Positions 13,755 through 38,596 of a stretch of DNA of 64,000 bases are shown here, in pieces. The notes beneath the pieces are model-generated. The model was given only the letters and a program-made list of their open reading frames with translations, was not told where the DNA came from and made no database searches. Source of the DNA: Cyanophora paradoxa CCMP329 (lineage: Eukaryota; Plantae; Glaucophyta); assembly GCA_004431415.1 (NCBI GenBank), contig QPMI01000054.1, forward strand, positions 310,001-374,000. Reading direction: 5' to 3'. The position numbers and the translations under genes were made by a program. Numbering within the stretch: the first letter of the stretch is position 1; each line of letters begins with the position of its first letter.

Positions 13755-14917
13755 CACTATAGCCAGTACCGGTAAATCGCCAGTTCTACAGTAGCTATAG
13801 TCTCTCAGTAACACATCCTCGATATTGCCAAGTTGCCATCGACAATGTTACGGCAGGGCCCAAGGCCCGGGGGGTGATTTCTAGGCTTCGTAGCCAAATC
13901 CGGCGCGGCGCTGAGCTAGTCTGAGACACCTTCCTAGTCTGATAGGATTCTCGCCTTTCTTCACAAGTTTCTTGACAATAATGCGATAATTATAACTGGA
14001 TTCGAATTCGAAACTGCATGCGTGGAAGAATTGGAAGTTCAGACAGAAATTGTTTGGTGGCGCGGCTTTCGAATTCAGATGACCTTTCAAATTCCTCACT
14101 CGTCTTCATGCAGGCAATTTTACCGGTCCGCAAGTTCAGATTCAATCGATTGAGCCCTCGGGTCTTAAAAAATCAATCAATGTTCACCAGCGGTCCGCAG
14201 CGAACCATCCGGACCCCCATCGATCGTCATATCGGCGGCGATTCGGCGCGGGCCCCATAAGGGCCCATTTGCATGCCATGAATCATGGCCTTTGATGCCA
14301 GAATTAATTCCAGAATTCAATAATGCCATCATTGCCCGGGGCCATGTGAAGTTGTGAACAGCCGCCATACATGTCCAGCCGAAATTCTAGCGGAGCACAG
14401 CGAACGATTGGCGCGAAACTGAGCACGTCAGAAGTGCAGTTTGGAGCAATCTAGAGCAGGGAAATTTTTGGTTTCGCGCCAATGTCTCGCCGTGCAGAAG
14501 TTGGTCTCGGGGGTCGCTGCGCCCCGGCCCCCTCTTCAGCCCTCGACAGCTCAAGGCAGCTCAAGGCCCGCCCAGGCCCCCCCGCTCCCCCCAACTGCCC
14601 TTCCCGGGACTCGAACGCTGGGGCAATAAGACGCCGGCCGGGCGCACTGCTAGCTCGGCTAGCTCGCCGCGAAACTGGCCTTTTCCTCGTCGCCTTTGTA
14701 TGGCCATACATCTAGGAAAATTTCGTACCGGATCCGCACGAAACTGAGCCTTATTCTAGCATCAAGATGCATACTAGCTAGTATTAAACGCTTCAGTTTC
14801 TCGCCAATCGCTTCCCATTATTTTCAAAGTTTATCCAGCCAAATCGACCAGATGCAGTGAACACTGAAGAGAGCTGTAGTCGGTGTACTCACTGACTATA
14901 GCTACTGTACTACAGTG
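13755..14917. mobile_element. Decayed TIR element, possibly CACTA-type
   Basis: Perfect 16-bp inverted repeat TACAGTAGCTATAGTC (13787-13802) / GACTATAGCTACTGTA (14894-14909); outer ends CACTATAG and CTACAGTG; an internal near-perfect inverted pair CGATTGGCG(C/A)GAAACTGA at ~14405 and ~14800. Confidence 0.4.
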
Positions 14918-14929
14918 ACTGTACTCCGG

Positions 14930-15660
14930 AATCCGGAAATCAGTCGGAACTTCACTCGGAAGCTTAACGTTTTAACTAGTATGACTCGCGATCGGATTCG
15001 GATCCGGAACGTAATATAACGTCCGACGGTCCGAACGTTAACTTCCGAAGTTCCTCCCCGACTCCGAGGAGCCCCGGAGGGCCGAATGATGCCCGAAATT
15101 AAATTGGCCCCGAATTCGAATATTTAATCCCCGATATCGATCCGATGCCATGATGATCCGACCGATTCCGACGTCGACGCCGTGACGTCGACGGTCCGCG
15201 GATCCGGAGTCCAATCTCCGGAGCGGGGCAGCCCGGCGGAGTCGATCGCGATTCGCGAGTCGCGAGTCGACTCGCGACTCAGTCCGACCGACTCCGACGT
15301 CGACGTCGACTCAGTCTCAGTCGACGTCGCGCCGGTCGCGGTCCCGGCCGCGGCGTCCCGCGGAGTCGACGTCGACGTCGGCGCGGAGTCGCGGACTCGC
15401 CGCGGACTCCGGGAGGCCGGGCGGCGGACCGTACCGCCGGCGGTACCTGGTAGTACCGTAGTACCGCGGTCCGCGGGTCCGCCGGGCCGGGGGCGCCGGT
15501 CCGATGCACGATGCGTCGATGACTCCGATCCCGGCGATCCGCCGGCGGCCGGCGGGCCGGCCGCCGCGCCCGCCGCCCGGCCGGCCCTCGACTCGGCGAG
15601 TCGGGCGCCGGGCGCCGCCGCTGCAGTGGGGAGTCACTGGGGAGTCAGTGCCACGGTGGG
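14930..15660. repeat. Palindrome-saturated non-coding tract
   Basis: Near-continuous overlapping 4-12 bp palindromes (TCCGGA, GTCGAC, GACGTC, CCGCGG, TCGCGA, GGTACC, GCCGGC). Confidence 0.75.
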
Positions 15661-18600
15661 GACCCTTAAGCTTGCCGTGTAACACAAAAATATGCCATGA
15701 TGGCTGACATATTCAGGTCGTTATAAAACTTGACCCTTCTCTTGGTGAAATATGACGGTCCCAAATTATGTCCGACGGTCGTCATGACTCATGAAGTTTT
15801 CAGGCTTGTATGGCCCATGGGGCGGTTAATCGTGTGGGGCGACCTATTGTACCCGTTTTATGACGGCCCCAAATTATAATTATGTCGTTAGATCATGTCC
15901 GAACCGACATAAGATCGCGAGAGATTAATATTCGCGACAGGGCTTCCAACAGGGACAGGGCCCATGGCCAGGGGTAATCTTGCAATGGCCGGCGTTGGCC
16001 GCATGCGCAGCTGCAGGCTCTATATGATCTAGCGAAAGCGACGTCGACACGAATTCGAAGGCATCGCGGGGGATGATCATGAGTGCTGCAGCGCAGGCGC
16101 CCGTGCGACGTGGAGGTCCAGCTGCCCGTGCCGCGGCCGATCTTAAGCTTGCAATCGCTCACATGCATGAGCTCGGGAGGCCCGGGCCTCGCGATTGCGA
16201 TCGCGCTCAGTCATCTGCGCCGTCTGGCCATGGCCAGTGGTCCCTGGACGTCGACTCTGGGGCATCTTTCGACGTTTCGGATTCTCGGTTCCGGTGCGTT
16301 GACGTTCATTTTCCTTCTGATCATGAGGCCTACGCCCGCAGTCTACAAGGGCTGCAGCTGATCGTTATACATCGCTTTCTCGCCCGCTCATATGCATGGG
16401 CCGCGCGCGGACGATCAGAACGAAGATGGACAGCCTTCTCCACCAGCTCAGCAGAGGATCCGAGCCCGTCGGGTCGAGCGCGACGGCGCGGATCCGGAGC
16501 GTGGCGCTGCGGGAGGTGGAGCGGCGGCTCGCTCGCGCCGAGCGCTGGGCCACCGACGCGCCCGGCATCGAGGCCGAGGAGCTCGAAGCGGAACTGGCGA
16601 CGAAGCGGAAGCTTAAGGTGCGGACTGCGCATGCATATACAAACCAACATGTACAATATATATACGTATGCATATATGCGCTAGATAGATATATATCGGA
16701 TCGGCCGTTAATGATTTTATATAAAGAAACGCGATGATGATAATGATTACAGCCTGCACGCGCAAGCGCACGCATACGTATACGTCACGCAATTTTTGAA
16801 AAGAATTCGAAGACATCGATCGCAGCATACGCCCTATATACACCTAGGCCTGCAGCTGACGCTTCAATTCAAACAGACGGTTCCTAAATCTCTGGCTTCG
16901 AGATTCGCAAGTGCAACGGGGAAGCTCAAGATCGTCGGCGAGCTTCGGTCTTTGCCATCGAAGGCGCACCGGATTCGCGCGTTTGGCGGGAAGGGAGCAG
17001 GGGCGTCCGACCCCGGGTCTGCGGCCCTCTCCACGCCGCACGACCCGCGCGCGAAGCGAGAGGTGCGGTCCTTGGAATTCAACTCTCGCATTTGCCTTTT
17101 ATAGATATAGCTATCGCTCATCGTCGCCACCGTTGCGTTCAGTTCGACTTGCAACTCGCTCAAATCGAGTCCAAACTTAGTACGGCGCCTCAAATTGCGC
17201 GATCGCGAGCTCATCCGGATCATTAATTATTACTGCACTTCCAACAGCGAGCGTCCTCGGCCTTCCGAAGAACTCGTCCACGAGGCGCGGTGCGGTTGCG
17301 GCCCTTCAATTTAACGAAACGAAAGAAATTGAATATTCGCATGTACTGTATATACGTAGCTAGATCTGCATAATTATAGATTGCAAATTGATCGAACTCG
17401 AGCGCAGCAATGCAGGTTGGAGATCGTTGCTCGCTTCAGGAGCAGGTCCGCTCTCTAGCTATAGATCTAGATCTCATGATCAGGACTTTATAAATACATA
17501 TATTTAAAACGTGCATCATCGCTCGCGATCGCCGACTCGAGCTCGAGCTCGCACGTGCACACCGGTTCCTTTTGCGATTGATCATGCATACGATCACGTG
17601 CACGGCATGCGCAGCCCGACGAACGTTTTGGCGTGTCCATCATTGTACAGTCGAGGACGTCGCTGCGGGTGACTCTTCATGATCAAAGCGTTGCTGGCTC
17701 TGAAGCAACAGACGCCGAGGGGTACACGCTCAGCGCAAGCTTCGCGACGGATGGTCCAGCACCTGTGTGTTACATCTACAAACATGCTTGACAAAATGAA
17801 TCAAGTTTTCGGATTCGTTGATCAGCTCATTTTCGAGCGCAGGGACGCTCTGATTGCTGGTTAGCGAAAGGCCTGCGAGAGGTTTCGCTCTTCGTGGTCC
17901 GCTTTCGATCCGCGTTGCACTATATTATAAATTAATATGATTATCAATACTGTTCCGACGTGAAATTAATTTGCGATTGCGGATACGGTTTCTGGATACA
18001 TGATAAGCTGGACGACGACCCTCGCTTCGTTTCAAATGCCCTTCTTCACGTTGGTGCGCGATTTGTACCCGGCGCCGGCGTGCCCTCTAGATCTTGTTTG
18101 GTACATATCTCCGGTGGAATGATATCGATCGATCATGTGCAGCTGTCGTCGATCATAATCGTGAATATTAATCGACGGTTGCAGCTGTGTACGACGGAGG
18201 GAGCCGGACCCTGCGATCGATATCCCAGCTGCAGGCCTCGCGATCGCGATCGGATGAATTGAGCTCGAGCTCGAGCTCGGACGACAGTCCTTCAAAATCA
18301 AAGTCGTTGCAGGTGCGTTCAAGATAAATATAGCTAGAAGGAGATCGCTCATCGTTGTTGTTTTTCATTATCAAACGCAAACAAATTTATTCATGCTAAT
18401 CAAACGTCGTTCGAATTCTTTGATCAAAGGGCTGATTCACGTGCATGCTTATTTCAGATTCACGTTGAAAGCATCCCCTTCCAGCCGCTGCAGACCGCAA
18501 AGTGCGCCTTGTGCATTTATTGATGCGAATGCATTTATAAATATTATCTCGTTGACGCACGCCATTCGCAAACGTCGTTCGCAGAGTCGTCAAGGAGTCG

Positions 18601-20484
18601 CTTTCCGCAAAGAAGAAGACATCTTGCGTCTATCGATTCAAGCCTCAAGCAGCTGGTGGGTTCCACCAAAATTGCATTTTCTTGACACCGCGAATGATTA
18701 GTCTTCAATATTCATCGCTGATCATGGCTTCTCTTGGAAAACGAAAAGCCGGCTCAAGTTCGGTGATTGTCGAGTTCATCGCAATCCAAGGAGACGCAGA
18801 TGTTCACATTTCCAACGACCCAAGTCAGGCCGTGCCATCGGCTGGTAGACCGCGAATTATTACGGGCTGTGGCCATGCTGGATCGTTATTATTGTGTGTG
18901 GCGCATTCACTCACGATCGATATCATTGGATGCAGGTCAGTGCATGTGGTCGCTGGATGGAATCACATCTCAAAAAGTTCAAGTCGACCCAATAAGCCCC
19001 CAGTATCGTGCGTGAATTTGAGCTCAGAATTAGAGCTAACGAAAATGCTCTAGATCTGATCGATTATAATATCATAATTTATTGCTGAGACTCGCGTTGT
19101 GCAGGCGTCAACTGCTGGTGGTTCATCACGGTTGAGCTGCGGACCAAGGACCCCGCAGCCGGCGCATCCGCGCCCGTGTCGTTCGCCCTTCGGGCGCAGA
19201 CCCAGCCGTTCCCCGCGAAAACGATCCAGCAGATGACGAGCTCCCTCGCCGAGGTGATTCCGTTCTTCGTAGCGTCGATATCGATATCTTTGAAGGGCGA
19301 CACACACACCTACCGGTTCTTATATAACTGGAGATCCAAAGCGGCTTTAATTTCAACGGTCTCCGACAGGTACTCGAGAGGCAAGAGCGAGAAGCGAGGC
19401 GGGCAGAGGATAAGACGCGTCAGAACGCGGAGAAGGAAGCGCACCATAAGGTCCGCATTCATCGTGCAATTGGCAATCGCGAACGGAGCTCCCTCCGATC
19501 ATGTCAACGTTTGAATTCGAATTCGCGCATAAAAGCGACTGACCGGCGCAAATCAAATTGCGAACGAAGTGCACTTCGGAGTCGTCCGCAATGTCGACGG
19601 TGAGTTTCATTTACAATAAATTAACGACGTACGCTTGTTTCTGGCGCATAATATCTGGCCCTTTTCTGGTTGCCGTCTTAATCATAAGCTTGTACTCGAG
19701 TTCGCGATCGATCTGATCATGACCGCGAGCAAAAATATTGCGCGCTATATTTTGCGCTATATTAATATATTCAATCGATCGATATCAGAACGGGCTTCCA
19801 ATCATCAAAGTCCTCTGCGTCCAGCCAGCGCTAGCCCGAGCCACAACGGGGCTCGACCGGCCGCGGGATCCATGGCCAGTGATCATGAGTCCGTCCATGT
19901 AGCAGCTGCAGGCTCCAGCTCCAGGTGCTCATGATCATGTATCTATGCAGAATATTCGGCTTCGGCCGCGCGCGGCGGTCGACTGATTGTGCTTGCGCAC
20001 GCCCTGCAGCAAAATGCAGGAAGCAGCGGAATCGGTTTCTTCGACGTCGAATTCGCAGCGTCGGATGCAGAAGCTGAGGCTGAGCTGGGAGCCGGCTCAG
20101 GTCAGCGAGAAAGCGATTTACGTGCGAACTGCCTTCATTCGAATTCCTCGCTCTAGATTTGTTGCGCTGGACTGAAGCTGAGAGTACCCGCGCAGGCCCG
20201 CTTGGATCGAGCGGCTGCGGCCAACGCGCAGCGGCGATCCGACGTGTACAGGGAGAGCCCGCGGGGGCGCCTCCCCGCCTCCAATTCCTTCTCCTTCGGG
20301 GCTCCCGCGGTACCGGTCCGTATTCGGACTTGGCTCGGGCGAGCGCTAGCCTGTGGCGGGGACCCTATAGCTATGGCTTAGGCTTCCTCCGGCTCTCCTA
20401 CATATAGCGGACGTGTCACACGCGCGCGTGTCCTCGCAGGCCCCTTCGAATTCAAATGCCAGCCCATGGCCAACACCCGTCGGC

Positions 20485-20780
20485 CACGCCGAGACGCACT
20501 CGGCCCCCTCGTCGCTGCGGAAATTCTCGATGCATATGCCTGTCCGCCCGAGCTCGCCGGCGGGGTCTCCTCTGCGCCAGCTGGCGATTGGTTCTTCGAA
20601 GCCGGCTCCCCCACGCGAGCTAGAGGCTCCCCCAACCAGCCACGCCGAGACGCACTCGGCCCCGTCGTCTCTGCGGAAGTTCACACTACCGATGCCAGTG
20701 CGCCCCATGGCCAGCTCGGACACGGGATCTTCAATGCAGCAGCACGGTTCCACCAAACCGGCTCCTCCCCGTGAGGCCCC
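20485..20780 (+). repeat. Diverged tandem duplication, ~156-bp unit
   Basis: CACGCCGAGACGCACTCGGCCCC...CTGCGGAA begins at ~20485 and 20641; both copies end near CCGGCTCC..CCC. Confidence 0.8.
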
Positions 20781-21049
20781 ACCGAGCTCGCGATCGAGCG
20801 CGGTGTCGCGATCGGCGCCATTTAAATTTGCGTCTTCGCATCGCCGAATTTACGACTCAAGCACGTCGAACAGTTAGTGTAGAACAGAGCAGTACATTCG
20901 CATATGTATACACGATTCCAATGCCGAGAGCAGTATCGATATTTTCACGATTTCCAATGCCGAGTCCACGATTTCAAAATTAAAAAACCCCGGCCCCCGC
21001 GCTGCGGCAGCATCTGTTTGCCCAGACGCGCACCGTAGCTTTATATATA

Positions 21050-21217
21050 CTAGTGGCCCGGCCGCGATTCTCGCGCCGGGGGTGCAAGGGGGGAACCGTA
21101 ATCTAATGAAAGAGTCGTAGTGGCACGCACATGCACGGGGCAGATCTAGATCGACCCCGGCCCGGCCCAGCGCGCGCGGCAGGTTGAAGTGTAAAGATAG
21201 ACACAGATTATATATGA
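21050..21217 (-). mobile_element. Helitron-like 3' terminus, possibly a short non-autonomous Helitron
   Basis: Minus strand reads hairpin CCCGG-CGCGA-GAA-TCGCG-G-CCGGG, then CCA-CTAG followed by T (CTAG at 21050-21053). Candidate A|TC 5' ends at 21217 or 21207. Confidence 0.55.
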
Positions 21218-22831
21218 TTGAAAAAAATAGAGAAGGCCCGATAAGCAGACGCTGCGATCAAACCGAATAAGGAAAAGCCTCAATGAAAGGCCAGATTCAG
21301 CGCACTCTATATGATCATGAAAGATTGTTCTGGAGCGAAAAAACGCTGCGCATCAACTGTGTTCGCACGGCCTACCGCTAACCCTGAACAGCTGGCTAAA
21401 AGATGATGGTGCTGTCTGCAGAGGGCTCGCCGTAAACATAGGCGATCCAGGCCTTCTGGAGGGGGTCGGGGCGGAAGTCGACCATGGGGGTGAGCGGCAG
21501 CCAGCGGCGCCGGTCCTGAAGAGAGCCGTCTTGCGAGAGCATGGTGAGGCGGCCCGCCGCCTCGAGCGCCCGCAGAGCCACGCGGCTGGCGCGCTGCTCG
21601 CTCCCGCCGCGCATCTGGTAGACAAGGTCTTGAATCTCGATATCCGCGAGGCCGGCATGTGGAGGTCCTCGATCGCAGGCCTGCCGTGGCAATCATGATC
21701 ATGAACAGAGGTCAGCTATGGGCGGTCCACTTCAATGAATCTTCGCGCACCCGACAAAGCGAACGACGAAGCGATCCTGCCGCGCAGCCGCGAGTGCTTC
21801 GACGGTCGCTAAAGCGAAGGCGACGGCTTGCTCGCGCGTGGGGGGGAAGCCAGCCCGGTCGGGGATCGGGAGCTCGCGGACGACGATGAGCAGCGGCTTC
21901 TCAGCCGCTCCGAGCACGGACACGAGACCGCCGACGTCGGGGGCCGCTCCAAGACGGCTCAGTTTCGCGGGATGCGCATTCGGTTTCGCGGGGATCGGGA
22001 CCATGAGTTCGGGATTCAGAATTCGGAATGCGGGACTCGGGGCTTGAGTCAGCGTGATTCAGATCGTTTTCGTCCGAAGACGATACACGATCAGCTGATC
22101 TCCCATTGCAGCGCACGCGTTTCGAGGCCCTGAGGAGGGTTCGTGCACAGCATTTCAGCGATTTGAAGAAGTCTCTTGAGATTCATTACGCACTGCGGAC
22201 GGCGATGGTGGCAAAGCCTGGAGCAACAAGTCATTCACATTATGCGGGATATATATCGATGATTCTATTGCAAACCTGATTGATTTGACGGGCCAGTGCT
22301 GCCGCAGTGCTCCAATGTTCCTCTGGGGCAGTTGGAACGCTCCAGGCTGACTCAGTGAGCGTGCGGCAGTTGAAACGCTCCAGGCTGAGCGTGCACGTCA
22401 TTGCGGCCGGGAGATGCATGTCAACCAACGAGAGGGTACCGCCAGGGGCAGAGGCGACGATAAGCCTGTGGGAGGACTTCTCTGGACTTCAGCTGCGGCG
22501 CCCTGTGTATGCAGTATAATCTCAGAAAGCGAAACGCCAACTGAAGACTGGACACGCACTGCTGAATTAAGAGTACCCTGCGTGGCAATGAATACGTGTG
22601 TTATAATTAGCAGCTCCGCTTTTGCCAGCGCGCGGCTCAATCGAAACTGCACGAACTCGAGAGCTGCGACCATGCCATGATGCTGCGCATGCCGGACATG
22701 ACGAAACAAGCTCTGGCGCCAGCAGAAGTGTTCACGGGCTCCGTCCGGACAATGTAAGCAAGTTCCGCCGTTGCATGATGACGACACTGTGCAGCGGGCG
22801 CCACACGCGACGAAGTCCCGCCCCGGGACGA

Positions 22832-23574
22832 CACTAGTAAAAGGGGGGTCGCCGGAGCCTGTTTCAGCCTGATTTAAATCAGGCTTAAATCAGGCCGAGA
22901 CAGGCTTGGAAAAACAGGCTCAGCCTAATTTCGGAGGACTAAGCCTGATTTGAAACAGGCTGAAACAGGCTTGAATCAGGCTTGGATCAGGCTGAATGAG
23001 GCTCGAATCAGGCTTCAAACAGGCTTGAACATCAGGCTCGAATCAGGCTTATTTCAGGCTGGATCAGGCTTGCTACCCCCGCCCCGCCCCCAGCACCGCG
23101 CCAGCACACATAGAAGCATCGGAACTCGCATTGCACATATGAGAAGCACTGTTCTACATCTAAACATGCAGACTCGCACTGAAATTTGAAAGCGTTGAAA
23201 TTAAACGTTGAAAAACTGCAGCCTGCTTATCTGCATCTAGATCTGGTACAAATGGTACAAATGGTACAAATGGTACAATTGCAATGGCACTACTTGGGCT
23301 TGCCGCCAGCCTTGCCGCCAGCCTTGGCGGCCGGCGCTGCGGGCTTGACCTTGGGCTTGCCGCCAGGCTTGGGTCAGGAATCAGGCTTGGGTGCAGGCTG
23401 GAGTCCAGCCTGTAAAGAAATCAGGCTAGCCTGATAGCTAATCAGGCTAGCCTGTTTGGCAATCAGGCTGGAATCAGGCTGGCGGCTCAGCCTGATTCCA
23501 GCCTGTTTTCGAATCAGGCTAGCCTGATATTAATCAGGCTGAAACAGGCTCCGGCGACCCCCCTTTTACTAGTG
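22832..23574. mobile_element. Non-autonomous CACTA (En/Spm) element, 743 bp
   Basis: Perfect 43-bp TIR CACTAGTAAAAGGGGGGTCGCCGGAGCCTGTTTCAGCCTGATT at both ends; many subterminal (AAT)CAGGCT/AGCCTG(ATT) repeats in both orientations; no coding capacity; no TSD evident. Confidence 0.88.
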
Positions 23575-23900
23575 GCGCGACGTCTCCGGGTACAGAAGCG
23601 GCTGCAGATCGTCGTCCCATCTGGTGCGGACTTAATCAGCAGCAGACTCACGCGCGCAATTCGGCGAAGGTGCTAGCGGGCATAAGGCTGCGGCGCAATC
23701 TGCCAAACTTCGGAAGCAAGCACCGCGGCCAGTCCAAGAAGCCGAGCAGCGGAGTGCCGAGCGCAACAAGAGGGCGCGGCCCGGCTGGCGTGCTCGGCTG
23801 CGGGCAGCGCGGTACGCAGTACTGCGGTGCAAGCTTGATGCAGTGAAAAGTAGTCCAGGCGGCACGGGTACCGTGCGACGTACGCGGCGCACTGCATGCA

Positions 23901-24069
23901 GCTGCGAGGAAGCGGAAATCTAGAGGAGACGTTGACAGCTAGAGAGAAGTGGTTCCATGCAGAACCGCGCAACGAAGAGCAAGGCGCCGGCGTACGCGAC
24001 ACACTGCGAGGAAGCCGAAATCTAGAGGAGACAGCTAGGGAGATCTGGTTCCATGCAGAACCGCGCAAG
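23901..24069 (+). repeat. Direct repeat, two diverged ~65-bp copies
   Basis: CTGCGAGGAAGC(G/C)GAAATCTAGAGGAGAC...TGGTTCCATGCAGAACCGCGCAA at ~23902 and ~24004. Confidence 0.8.
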
Positions 24070-33140: not shown

Positions 33141-36100
33141 ATGGGTCTTGCCAGTGTACGCATCTTGATCGGCGCCCTGGTCCTGCTGACCGGCTCGTTT
33201 GCGCTGGCACAAAGTGCGTGCCTCATGGTTGTAGTCTGCCGGCTTCCCCGTCGCTTGGCTGACAGGGGGAGGCGCCGAAGCAGCGGAGGCTTGCATCGAA
33301 GGGAAGCTCATGCCGATCAACGACACAAACGGCACCATTGAGGCTTCTTCGCCAGCCAGCGCTTCCGCGAGCTTCAACTACTGCGACTGGTTGCTGCAGC
33401 CAGCCGGCGCAGGCGACACCGGAGAGTGCGACAACGGGTGCGGCACCCTTAGCTGACCGGGCCTTGTCCGCGCGGCTCACAGTGCGTGGTCAGACAAGCG
33501 GTGGGGAGCGCGTTCTGCCGCGCTGCGTTTGTGGCGCTGAGCCTGGACTCGTTCGACCTGAAGGCCGGGCAGTACATCCACGTGTACGACGGCACGAGCG
33601 CCTCGGCGCCGCTCCTGGCGACCTTCACGGGGAAGAGCGCCGACACGAAGAAGCGCGTCGTCGGCTCCTCGCGCTCCGCGCTCCTCCTCCGGCTCTCTTT
33701 CACCACCAGCGGGTCCGCGGCGGGCACCTTCTCGGCGTCCTACCAAGGTGCCGCGCCCCGGCCTCGCGCGGCCCCGCCGGCGGGCCCGCCCGGAGCCGAC
33801 CGGCGGGCCGCGCAGGGGTCGCGCGGCTGCCGCCCTCGCTGAGCGTCGCCGGCTTTCGATCGCGGACCTACCGCTACTGGGGCTTCCGCGTGAACACGAC
33901 GGAGCGGGGCGCGGGGGCCCTGGCGCGCGTCGAGGCGACGATCGGCCCCCCCACCGTCGACCCCGAGCGCTCCTCCAACCTGCGCGCCCTCTTCCTCCGC
34001 CAGGGCCCGCCCCCCCCCCACCTTTCCTTCCTTTTTCCTTCCTTTCTGAGGCGCCGGCAGACGGCCTGCCCTTCGTCAACCCCCGCACCCGCGTCGGGCG
34101 CGCCCCGCCCCGCCACTCCCGCCCCGCCCTCTCCTCGCGCTTTCCTCACGCGGCGCGCGCGCGCGCGCAGGCAATGGGACCGGGCGGACTACGCTGGGAT
34201 CGAGAAGACGGCGTCGCTCGGGTCCAAGGCGAACAGCTACCAGACCATCCGCCTGAACGCCTCCGAGGTCGCCAACTCGACGTGGTGCGCCCCTCCCGCT
34301 TCGAGCCGCCCGCCCGGCCCGGCCCGCCTCCGACGCGCGCGGGGCGCCGGCGCGCAGGTTCGTCCTCGTGTACAGCTTCGCGGAGCCGGGCGACATCTCC
34401 CTCCAGCTCACCTACAACGACGGCCGTGCGCCCCCCGCCCTCCTCTCTGCTCCGCCGCCGGCGCCGGCGCCCGAGGCCGAGGCGGGCGCCGACGGGCCGG
34501 CGGGGCGCAGAGAGCATCCCGTGCCCGCGGCCGGGCGGGGTCGAGTGCTCGGGCAAGGGGACCTGCTCGGCCGCCACGGGCCTCTGCGCCTGCGACGCCA
34601 CGTTCATCGACGTCGACTGCAGCGCCAGTGCGCCCCGCCCCGCCCCCGCTCCATCCCGGCGCGCGCGCGCGCCGACGCCGTGGGGCCTGCGGCTGCAGCG
34701 TCGCTGCAGCCGCCGCTGCTCGCCGGCAAGTCGGGGATTTTCACGGGCAGGCTCAAGGGGATGGTCGGTGCGCAGCGCAGCTGCGGGCCGCCCCCGCGCC
34801 GCGCCAAAGCGGCCAGACTTGAAGAGGAGCCTCACTCGGGCGCCTCGGCGGCGCAGTGCACGAGCTGCGCATCAACGGGACGGGCAGCTTCATCGTGGAG
34901 CTCAACCGCACGGCCGGCAACCCTCTGCTCCTCCTCAAGGCGCGGCTGTTCACCGTGCCCTCCTCCCCTGCCCCTTCTTAGCCCCCTCCGCAGCAATCCG
35001 GCGCCCGGAACGTGGAACTGCCCTCGCTCGTATTCGACCCCGACACGACCATGGACATCTCCTCGGCCGTCTCGCTGCTCAAGGTCCGGGATCGATCCCG
35101 CGCGGGGCCCGTCTCCTCGTCCCTCGCGCCGAGCGGGCCCGCTCGCCGGCAGACGCACCGCATGCGGGGATACGCGGCCGCGGCGGGTATGTGGTACGTG
35201 GGGGTGTACAGCGACCAGCAGACGCTCGCGGACTGGCGCCTCGATACGCCCTCCATCCTCATACCGCCCCGCCAAGTCTCCGCCCCGTCGGAGTACACGC
35301 TCACGGTCACGTGGCTGGGTGAGCCCCCACCTCGTGTCCCCGTACCCCGACCTCTCTGAGCGCTCCCGCCGTCTCGCAGCCGGGGAGGAGGTGCCCTGCC
35401 CCTCGGACTGCCCCGCGGCCTACTGCAACCGGTCCACGGGCAACTGCGACTGCCCCAGTGCCCCCAAGCCCCTCGCCGGGCCCGCCTGCGCCGAGAAGCT
35501 CTACTCCATGACCCTCCAGGTGCGCCGTACCCCGGGGAGGGGGGGAGCGCCGTACCCCCCTTGCCCCCGACGCTGTTCCTCAGACGGAGAGCGACACGTT
35601 CGCGGAGGCGAACATACCCCCCGCCTCCTGGCTCTACGTGAACATAACCGTACCCCCCACATCGCCCCGCGCGGCGCGGGTGCGCGCCCCACCCCGCCCT
35701 CCCCTTCCCTCTCCCCGCCGCCCTCTCAGCGCGGTGGTGTTGGGCGCAGGTGGACGTCGCCCTCAAGTCGATCACGTCGGGGGACGGGACCCTCGTCGCC
35801 ACGCGCGACACGCTGCCCCTCTACGTGCGTACCCCCCACCCCCTCCCCCCGTTCCCTCGGCGCCGCTGGCGGGCCTCGAGCGCCGCGCACCGCTGACTCT
35901 CCCCGCCCCTCCTCGCCCCTTCTCCCGCCCCCGCAGGCCTACCGCTACCGCAGCGGCGTGGTGGCGCAGTACATCGGGCCGCAGGCGCGCCCCGCCCCCC
36001 CTCGGCCCCCGCCCCCCGCCTCCCGCCTCCCTCCGCGCCTGACGCGGGGGGCGGGCGGGCGGGCAGGCGCTGGCGGGCCCGTCGGCGGCGAGCCGCTTCA

Positions 36101-38142
36101 GCGTGACGCTCGCCGACTCCGACTCGATCGCCACGGGCGGCTCCTGGTGGTGCGCCGCCCCCCGCCCGGCCCGCCCCCGCCCCCGCTCCCGCCCCCGCTG
36201 AGGCGGCCGGCAGCCTGGCCGTCTACAACAGCGACTACTTCACCTCGTCGGAGCTCACCTTCTCCCTCCGCATCACCAGTGCGCGCGCGCCCGGCCCCTC
36301 GCTCGGCTTCGCCCCGGGGCTTCGAGCGCGGGGCGGCAGCGTGCGGGCTCTCGTGCAGCAACAACGGCGTCTGCCGCGACGGCAAGTGCCAGTGCTTCTT
36401 CGGCTGGACCGGCTCCGACTGCGCCACCAGTGCGCCCCCCCGCGCCGGCCCCGCGCCCGTCCCGGCCGCCCGCCGGGCTCTGCTCCGCTCACGCCGGCCG
36501 GCTCCGCGGCGCAGCGACGTGCCAGAAGGGGACCCTCGACATCCTCCGGGGCGTCTGCAACTGCCAAGACGGCTGGACCGGCCTCAACTGCGACGAGCAG
36601 GGTGCCCCCTGCCTCCCCCCCGCTCGCCCGCGCGCTCGCCTGGCCGACGCGGGGCCGCGGGCAGCGCGGCCGCCGGCGGCGATCGCCCTCTCCGTCATCG
36701 TCGTCTCCGTGCTCTCCTGCTTCCTAATGTGCCTCTGCGTCTTCGTCTGGTGGCGCATCCGCAAGGCCCGCCCCCCGCGCCCGCCCCGCGCCCCCTCTCG
36801 GGAGGGCGCCCCGGACTGACGGCGCACCCCCCCTCAGGCACGGGAGCGCGTGCGGGCGATCGAGGTCGTCCTTCAGAACGCCGTCGACGCCCATGAGCTC
36901 CAGGTACCCCCCGCGTGGCTTTTTGGGGGTACCCCCGTGACCCCGGGCGAAGGGGGGCCAGGCGCAGTCCGCGGGACCTCCTCCCCCCCAGGGCCTTCCC
37001 CGACAGGTCCGCCCCTCCTCAAACCCCTGGGGGCCCCATGTTGCGATCCGGTACCCCCCCGCAGGTCATCCACGTCTTTCCGGCGTACCCCTTCCGCGAG
37101 GGCTCCATGCCGAAGGAGAACGCGACGTGCGCGCCCTCTCCGTGCCCGCGCTCCCCGCCCCCGACACGCGTACCCCCCTCAGGTGCTCGGTGTGCCTGGG
37201 GGACTACACCGAGGGCGAGCAGGTCCGGATGCTGCCCTGGTGCGCCGTAGTACCCCTTCCCCTCCCCTCCCTTCTTCCATCGCTCACTCCTGTACCCTTC
37301 CTCAGCCTGCACGTGTACCACGTCGCGTGCATCGACGAGTGGCGAGCCCTGCCCTTCCGCTTTCCTCCCAAAGCTGCGCGTACCCCCTCGGCCGTCGTGA
37401 CGCCGGGGGCGGCAGGCTCTCGAACCACACGACGTGCCCGCTCTGCAAGCGGGACCTGACGGAGTACTCGGCGGCGGAGGGCCAGGTGCCGGCCGTCGTC
37501 GGGCCGGCGGACCCCCTCGCCGCGCGCCCGCCCGGCGCCTTCGCGCCCCAGAGCGCCGTCCTCGCCGTCGGCGCGAGCTCCGACAGCAGCGCCGGCAGCC
37601 TGCACGACCCGGGGCCCGGGCTGGGCCCGCGCGCAGCTCGAGGCGGGCCGCCCGCGAGGAGGCCCCCACGCCGCCCCTGCCCGGGCCACCACGGGGGACA
37701 GGACGGCGAGCCGGAGAGCCCGCCGAGCGCCTCGCCCCTCCCCTCGGCGAACCGGGCCCAGATAGGGCCCACTACAGCCGCCCCCGGCCCCGCCCCCGCC
37801 CGGCAACGCCGCGACCATCGTGCCCCGCCCCGGTGCGCGTACCCCCGCCCGTCCGCGGCGGCGGCCACCGCTGAGGGCGCTGCGGCAGGGCCGCCCCCTC
37901 GGTCTCGCCGGTCCCGGCGGGCCCCTCGGCCCCGCGGCGCAGCCGCCTGGGTGGGCGGCGCGCAACGGGTGGGGTGCCGCGGCGCCGCCCCCGCCTGGGC
38001 GCTCGGCGGGGGCGACGCGGCAGCCCCCCGCGGCTCGCTTTCCATCGTCGACGGCCGCCGGCCCGATGTTCATAGGGCCCCCGCCCGGGCCCGAGCCGCC
38101 CCTGCCTTCGGGGCAGCAGCCCAGGCGATAGCGAGCGTCTAG
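33141..38142 (+). CDS. Type-I membrane RING-H2 E3 ubiquitin ligase with CUB + PPC-like + 4 EGF-like ectodomain
   Basis: Signal MGLASVRILIGALVLLTGSFALAQ; CUB (CDWLL...VALSLDSFDLKAGQYIHVYDG...LLATFTG...FSASYQ); EGFs (CSGKGTC..GLCACDATFIDVDC; CNRSTGNCDC; CSNNGVCRDGKCQCFFGWTGSDC; GVCNCQDGWTGLNC); TM IALSVIVVSVLSCFLMCLCVFVWW-RIRK; RING-H2 [42 protein letters not shown]. The 3' end is approximate. Confidence 0.88.
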
Positions 38143-38596
38143 GTCATTTTTTCCAGCTTCGTTTCGATCGGCAGGCCCAGCCCTGTAGGTAGATCTGTAT
38201 CTGGCATTAATATTCAATGATTCAAGAGAGACCATGGTCGATCAGCTTCGCACCGCAGTTCTGGACCCAGATCTACTAGTACGAGCCGCAGCCGCGCCGG
38301 CTCTTGAGATCGAGCTCGACGAGCGCAAGCCCCGTTTCTCATATACATCATATGCGCACGCATTTGCACTGCGGCATCGTTTACATCATATGCGCACGCA
38401 ATTTCGAAGAGTGTATCGTTTCGATCGGCAGGCCCAGTTCCATTGCCGCAGGCCAGAGTTCATGATTGCGCGCACCGCGGCTCGCTTCCTGGCCGAGTTC
38501 GCAGGAGCGCGAAAACGAAGGTGCCCCGTTGGCGCTGATGCGCGAGCCGCAGATTTATATTTTGGCGCCTGTCCTGTACATCCTCGGGCTCGGGGC

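Follow-up and report, generated by a model that had tools for sequence, protein, structure and literature searches.

A predicted receptor-type RING-H2 ubiquitin ligase with a CUB/PPC-like/EGF ectodomain in Cyanophora paradoxa and its relatives in other algae

Gene Structure and Membrane Topology

The window analyzed here, a stretch of 64,000 nucleotides (nt) of contig QPMI01000054.1 (positions 310,001 to 374,000 of the forward strand, assembly GCA_004431415.1) from the glaucophyte Cyanophora paradoxa CCMP329, contains at 33141-38142 on the + strand a gene of 29 exons and 28 introns with 1023 codons plus a stop. The original prediction, made from the letters alone, described a secreted-type ectodomain of CUB, PPC-like and EGF domains that is joined through one transmembrane helix to a RING, and every element that it listed is present on the same strand. 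The encoded protein, called P0001 below, is EukProt EP00741 Cyanophora paradoxa tig00000204_g17754.t1 (1023 amino acids, aa), of which all 29 exons were reproduced exactly on the window. It was retrieved with a query of a single exon, residues 376-421 of the stop-free frame-0 stretch 34257-36893, to which it is identical over the exon (100 %). The domain order, the topology signals and the full set of zinc ligands are present, and the layout is conserved in several algal lineages.

The ATG is located at 33141, with an in-frame stop directly upstream, and the stop codon at 38140-38142. G+C is 0.70-0.78 around the gene and short introns are numerous. The 28 introns are all 49-112 nt long, in agreement with the uniform introns of the original prediction; 22 are of the GT-AG type, with donors that are mostly GTGCG, and six are GC-AG. 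When neighbouring exon pairs were tested against P0001, the reading frame was kept across all junctions and the splice sites were canonical. Reading the three + frames alone gave 25 in-frame exons from the ATG at 33141 to the stop at 38140-38142. This reading was dropped for the public model, from which it differs in five places, and it does not include two introns in the tail. The differences concern the donor of exon 2, a 37-nt mini-exon (34061-34097), an exon end at 34939, an exon that ends at 35679 in the public model and at 35649 in the 25-exon reading, and an extra public exon at 36953-37006. A family alignment (A1) backs the public model at the mini-exon, at the 34939 end and at the 36953-37006 exon, and the public model is used throughout for coordinates and residues.

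The six GC donors (window 34005, 34098, 34940, 35985, 36766 and 37342) make up 21 % of the introns, far more than the share of about 1 % that is usual in eukaryotes. They are mostly gcccgcc or gcgcgcc, and at each of them no other junction reproduces the public protein. The two annotated isoforms, P0001 and P0136, differ by one Ala at the acceptor of exon 2 (33277-33286), which fits two AG acceptors 3 nt apart.

Hydropathy, Pfam and the positions of the zinc ligands recovered the predicted signal peptide, the single transmembrane helix and the complete C3H2C3 RING. Exon 1 (33141-33213) encodes the signal peptide, residues 1-24. Only two hydrophobic windows were found in P0001, at residue 3 and at residue 702. 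The latter corresponds to the transmembrane helix (residues ~702-729), which is followed by basic residues and is encoded by exon 21 (36665-36765), directly after EGF repeat 4. The ectodomain, from signal peptide to helix, spans about 680 residues and contains nine N-x-S/T sequons, against two in the cytosolic part. Because of the signal peptide, the single helix, its basic flank and the bias in sequons, a type I topology is predicted, with the RING on the cytosolic side. The cytosolic part starts with a juxtamembrane helix and linker (exons 22-23, 36838-37006), which is conserved with the homologue P0007 in alignment A1. The pre-RING segment and the RING-H2 (C795-C835) follow in exons 24 to the start of 27 (37065-37460), a segment that is split by three introns. 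The rest of exon 27 and exons 28-29 (37461-38142) encode a low-complexity cytosolic tail rich in Ala, Pro, Arg and Gly, which comprises the last 178 residues and lacks conservation in the homologues.

Domains of the Ectodomain

Exons 2-3 (33284-33747; residues ~26-161) encode the predicted CUB domain. Pfam CUB (PF00431) scored 24.7 bits for the exon at 33495-33746 alone and 18.7 bits in the whole protein (cut-off 21.4); the top library matches of the ectodomain search, which are true CUB-repeat proteins, also support a CUB. The closest library relatives of this domain, P0003 and P0004, are not animal CUB proteins; they are proteases of bacteria that have a Por secretion tail along with 8-16 CUB repeats, at 33-39 % identity.

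The remainder of the ectodomain alternates between beta modules and EGF-like repeats. Module A is encoded by exons 4-7 (33816-34425; residues ~162-297), EGF-like repeat 1 by exon 8 (34511-34627), module B by exons 9-12 (34699-35318; residues ~336-472), repeat 2 by the first part of exon 13 (35380-35500), module C by the end of exon 13 and exons 14-18 (35501-36278; residues ~513-641) and repeats 3 and 4, which are of the teneurin/tenascin type, by exons 19 and 20 (36340-36601). Three of the four EGF repeats of the original prediction exceed Pfam cut-offs: repeat 1, with Cys invariant in the family, matches EGF_2 (PF07974; exon 34513-34626, 28.3 bits, cut-off 22.1), and repeats 3 and 4 match EGF_Teneurin (PF23106; 34.4 bits at 36342-36428 and 26.4 bits at 36517-36600, cut-off 24.3). 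Repeat 2 gave no match in the Pfam scan and was assigned by its six Cys, which form invariant columns in the family.

Modules A, B and C are homologous to each other. Profiles built from alignment A4 and compared with hhalign gave 97.7 % (E 1e-12) for A and B, 98.7 % (E 2e-16) for B and C and 95.6 % (E 1e-8) for A and C. Therefore, the conserved core of the ectodomain consists of three units of beta module and EGF-like repeat. The beta modules have no Pfam family of their own; a Pfam scan of 21 family ectodomains gave EGF models and weak PPC matches only, and a profile search of the sequences in the PDB gave weak EGF matches only.

An AlphaFold model of the ectodomain was made with an alignment of 21 sequences (mean predicted local distance difference test score, pLDDT, 67; predicted template modelling score 0.61) and compared with 48,161 PDB representatives by VIA-align. 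A model from the single sequence had a pLDDT of 37 and was uninformative. Modules B and C of the family-based model are mostly at pLDDT 70-90, and module A shows beta strands at low confidence. Module B matches the collagen-binding domain of ColG (1nqd; Z 10.1, root-mean-square deviation, rmsd, 2.1 over 97 residues), the C-terminal jelly roll of Tk-SP subtilisin (Z 9.9), the collagen-binding domain of ColH (3jqw; Z 9.7) and the PPC domain of a B. anthracis collagenase (5sv5; Z 9.6). It thus has the fold of bacterial PPC/collagen-binding domains (ColG s3b, ColH s3 and the B. anthracis collagenase; Z 9.6-10.1, rmsd 2.1-2.9, 97-104 residues), whereas here it occurs in a eukaryote, in turn with EGF repeats and linked to a RING. 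Module C superposes on PliG, the C-terminal domain of C. perfringens enterotoxin and CUB with Z 8-10, as a generic jelly roll. The nearest structures in the ESM Atlas are two clusters of chlorophyte RING proteins (template modelling scores, TM-scores, 0.68 and 0.51), followed by bacterial PPC proteins. The model thus matches PPC/collagen-binding jelly rolls, and a PPC-like fold is supported for module B by structure comparison and for A and C through their homology to B, although the Pfam sequence threshold for the predicted PPC domains is not reached.

Foldseek matched the model to SID-1 ectodomains, reelin repeats and the CUB-EGF-CUB part of MASP-2. In reelin, jelly-roll sub-repeats also alternate with an EGF module, but the TM-scores are only 0.22-0.26 (3a7q, 2e26, 7lyu). 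Moreover, reelin is secreted and has no transmembrane helix or RING, and its likeness to P0001 is one of layout only.

The RING-H2 Module

The RING-H2 is located about 66 residues past the transmembrane helix. Pfam zf-RING_2 (PF13639) matches residues 794-836 with 50.6 bits (cut-off 27.3, E 2.3e-13), and all eight C3H2C3 zinc ligands are present (C795, C798, C813, H815, H818, C821, C832 and C835) in the spacing C-x2-C-x(9-39)-C-x(1-3)-H-x(2-3)-H-x2-C-x(4-48)-C-x2-C. The final Cys pair is preceded by a Trp and followed immediately by a Lys, and the Pro of C-P-x-C is there as well. In RING-E2 complexes these are E2-contact and linchpin positions, the Lys being at that of the linchpin, and since they are in place, the RING of P0001 is likely an active E3. 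When residues 745-850 were compared with solved structures, the best match was Arabidopsis AT5G66160 (RMR1, 7bvw; E 4e-20), followed by RLIM (2e-19), RNF38 (9e-16), RNF13 (2e-15), ZNRF3 (9e-14) and EL5 (5e-13). The alignment with RMR1 reaches 25 residues upstream of the RING. As judged from invariant alignment columns, conservation in the family is highest in the RING and in the segment before it.

Homologues in Other Organisms

Residues 25-640 of P0001, which contain neither the transmembrane helix nor the RING, were searched against 1.84 billion representative proteins. Most of the 122 matches were to the CUB domain only; three top matches that were scanned are true CUB-repeat proteins, two of them bacterial proteases. 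The beta/EGF region was matched in one long stretch (two in P0065) by P0007, P0035, P0053, P0065 and P0088, which come from an MMETSP transcript, marine metagenomes, Bryopsis sp. KO-2023 (GMH44443.1) and Rhodelphis marinus. All five carry a C-terminal zf-RING_2. P0007 is a complete open reading frame (ORF) on a single transcript of 3136 nt (L062) from another organism, with the same order of parts, and P0124, a cluster-mate of P0035, is encoded by an uninterrupted ORF of 2217 nt on contigs of up to 125 kilobases. A metagenome scan with an ectodomain alignment of three sequences (A3) gave 58 loci, 20 of which have an uninterrupted ORF of 680-907 aa with the ectodomain, one transmembrane helix and the RING-H2 pattern. 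One clade among these loci falls into a 90 % identity cluster together with CAL6434789.1 of Bathycoccus prasinos. Word searches returned only P0001 itself when alignment A1 was the query, and P0001 and a tenascin, the latter through its EGF repeats, when residues 150-720 of P0001 were used.

Because the homologues found with the ectodomain only and the intron-free ORFs all carry a transmembrane helix and a RING-H2, the one-chain layout is not an artefact of the gene model, and because the same order of parts occurs in homologues of other organisms, the architecture is far beyond chance. The joining of a receptor-like ectodomain and a RING in one chain, central to the original prediction, is supported by the homologous single transcript and the 20 intron-free ORFs, and the fusion is thus independent of predicted splicing.

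Family members were found in glaucophytes, Rhodelphis and chlorophytes. No members were found in land plants in these searches, in which a search of the library with a single sequence could miss distant members there or elsewhere. The CUB domain is detectable in P0001, has diverged in P0007 and P0065 (no Pfam match) and is absent from the shorter chlorophyte proteins; judging from these sequences, it is a lineage-specific addition outside the conserved core. In a quick tree, Cyanophora groups with the MMETSP sequence and Rhodelphis, while Bryopsis and the picoalgal sequences form a green clade on the opposite side. With support from the Shimodaira-Hasegawa-like approximate likelihood ratio test only, a midpoint root and long branches, this tree is in keeping with old vertical inheritance in Archaeplastida without proving it.

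In two further picoalga-like metagenomic loci (L042:2794-5004 and L055:2791-5001), the RING is interrupted by about 30 in-frame codons, which follow the two His ligands, precede the next Cys ligand and probably represent a short intron in a gene that is otherwise free of introns. The same type of ectodomain with beta modules and EGF repeats, lacking a RING, occurs in P0051 and P0135 of Balamuthia mandrillaris and in the metagenomic P0109. P0051 and P0135 terminate in one and the same acidic tail, whose short Gly-Tyr-His-Ser ending P0109 has as well. NCBI lists P0051 as 'WD repeat domain 87', apparently a misannotation.

Comparison with Known Receptor-Type Ligases

Receptor-type E3s let extracellular or intra-organelle events control ubiquitination in the cytosol. 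The PA-TM-RING ligases (RMR, RNF13, GRAIL and RNF43/ZNRF3) carry both their binding ectodomain and their RING-H2 on a single chain that crosses the membrane once. With these proteins (RMR1/AT5G66160, RNF13, RNF128/GRAIL, RNF43/ZNRF3) P0001 has in common a signal peptide, a binding ectodomain, one transmembrane helix and a cytosolic RING-H2 soon after it. However, their ectodomain has ~150-200 residues with a PA domain, whereas that of P0001 is built of a CUB domain, three PPC-like modules and four EGF repeats over ~680 residues. A PA domain was found by Pfam neither in P0001 nor in the 21 family ectodomains, and therefore P0001 is not a member of the PA-TM-RING ligases.

A two-chain receptor-type E3 is formed by MEGF8 or Attractin with MGRN1, in which a single-pass CUB/EGF protein is coupled to a membrane RING ligase (PMC12752501, PMC8254101, PMC12458338). 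The RING is thus in a separate chain there and in the same chain in P0001. Of the domains of MEGF8 and Attractin, Pfam found only CUB and EGF in P0001 and no Kelch, PSI, C-lectin or laminin-EGF domain, and the MASRPF motif, which recruits MGRN1, is absent from P0001 as well. Since these domains and the motif are absent, P0001 is not a relative of Attractin/MEGF8, with which it has no sequence kinship past generic CUB and EGF domains. P0001 shares the working principle of both groups and belongs to neither.

Plant ATL ligases have in common with P0001 the spacing of the RING-H2 ligands and, before it, a short conserved Gly-Leu-x motif and a hydrophobic stretch; EL5, which matched the cytosolic module at E 5e-13, is an ATL. 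Nevertheless, ATL proteins have an N-terminal anchor and essentially no ectodomain, whereas in P0001 the signal peptide is cleavable and the ectodomain large, and for this reason it is not an ATL.

To our knowledge, a PA domain is used by every one-chain receptor-type E3 known so far, and those with CUB and EGF domains depend on a ligase in a second chain. The principle of receptor and E3 in one chain, which the original prediction put forward, is not new; it is already realized in the PA-TM-RING ligases, the group with the closest RING. Its statement that the architecture is uncharacterized holds in so far as literature searches found no paper describing a CUB/PPC/EGF-TM-RING-H2 family and a catalogue of plant RING proteins (PMC6118397) does not mention EGF, but the family itself is already in the databases, where the RING-bearing members of Cyanophora, Rhodelphis, Bryopsis and Bathycoccus are entered as "hypothetical" or "unnamed" only. 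The family constitutes a third arrangement, conserved across several lineages of algae, among them marine picoalgae of very high abundance such as Bathycoccus.

Proposed Function and Alternative Explanations

By analogy with the PA-TM-RING group, we consider it fairly probable that P0001 works as a type I single-pass receptor-type RING-H2 ubiquitin ligase. The family is best read as an algal one that has a CUB/PPC/EGF ectodomain where the PA-TM-RING ligases have their PA domain. After cleavage of the signal peptide, the CUB domain, the three PPC-like modules and the four EGF repeats would face the lumen or the cell exterior, where the ectodomain would pick out its partner, which may be a protein or a glycan. 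In the cytosol, an E2 charged with ubiquitin would dock on the RING, and ubiquitin would be transferred to lysines on the cytosolic side of the bound membrane partner or of the ligase, upon which the complex would be sorted to endosomes or the vacuole or be degraded. E3 activity, ligand binding, location and substrates of the family are what we infer.

Several points weigh against this assignment. Firstly, the PA domain is absent, so that the mechanism is carried over by analogy. Secondly, kinship with the PA-TM-RING ligases is unproven by the RING alone, since the soluble RLIM is almost as similar as RMR1. Thirdly, the confidence of the ectodomain model is middling (mean pLDDT 67), with module A poorly modelled, and Pfam PPC (PF04151) had no match in P0001 and matched two of the 21 family ectodomains at E 0.011, under the cut-off. 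Lastly, on the Cyanophora side the support for one gene consists of the annotated model and its two isoforms.

The receptor-type ligase may take one of two specific forms, which the present data do not tell apart. It is possible that the protein is a luminal cargo-sorting receptor like plant RMR, which binds soluble cargo in the Golgi or trans-Golgi network and whose RING serves the post-Golgi traffic of the receptor itself instead of the degradation of a partner. AtRMR1 is indeed the best solved sequence relative of the cytosolic module, and PMC12552968 reports the RMR RING as an active E3 that is essential for post-Golgi trafficking. However, P0001 has no PA domain, the RLIM score is close to that of RMR1, and no cargo or sorting motif was identified.

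It seems rather unlikely that the ligase is instead, as a stronger version of the original prediction would have it, a signalling receptor at the cell surface, in which an external ligand bound by the CUB/PPC/EGF part switches the RING on or off. R-spondin controls ZNRF3/RNF43 by ligand binding, and MEGF8-MGRN1 is analogous in two chains. CUB and EGF modules are typical of extracellular receptors, the ectodomain has many sequons, and the concept of a receptor-type E3 is established (PMC12458338, PMC12752501). Still, placement in the plasma membrane and regulation by a ligand find no support here, and there are no known ligand-binding residues to compare. The CUB domain cannot be the conserved sensor since it is absent from the chlorophyte members.

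More tentatively, and with some doubt, the family could represent an old class of receptor-type E3 in Archaeplastida, in which the triple PPC-like/EGF ectodomain reads a cue from outside or from the lumen and passes it to the RING-H2 of the same chain. The cue may then be, for example, a polyproline- or collagen-like glycoprotein, or a glycan. If true, the family would do in one chain what MEGF8-MGRN1 does in two, and would offer another solution than the PA domain.

An adhesion or matrix protein, whose jelly-roll/EGF ectodomain would serve surface structure or adhesion and whose RING would serve only its own turnover, is improbable. The alternation recalls that of the reelin repeats, the EGF repeats are of the tenascin/teneurin type and the relatives in Balamuthia have no RING, but conservation peaks in the RING and the segment before it, which points to a catalytic function maintained by selection. 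The explanation that a secreted CUB/EGF gene and a small transmembrane RING gene were wrongly joined during annotation is close to refuted and highly improbable: the gene does have as many as 28 introns, spurious open frames run long in DNA this rich in G+C, and the evidence in Cyanophora is annotation, but the same order of parts is found on the 3136-nt transcript of another organism and in 20 intron-free ORFs, all junctions are in frame with canonical sites and the transmembrane exon comes straight after EGF repeat 4.

As a receptor-type ligase, the family provides a compact natural model, intron-free in picoalgae, for the coupling of an ectodomain to a RING across one helix. On the basis of its sequences, it is a candidate player in protein sorting or in the control of surface receptors in early-branching photosynthetic eukaryotes.

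Other Features of the Window

Just 3' of the stop codon lies an exact 22-nt direct repeat pair (38159-38180 and 38416-38437), 257 nt apart. Two 27-nt repeats with 89 % identity (38339-38365 and 38377-38403) are located between its copies. Elsewhere in the window, G+C in the stretch 14001-24000 is 0.50-0.61, compared with 0.66-0.77 on both sides, and its sole ORF of at least 180 aa is at 16073-16684. This stretch may be an inserted element.

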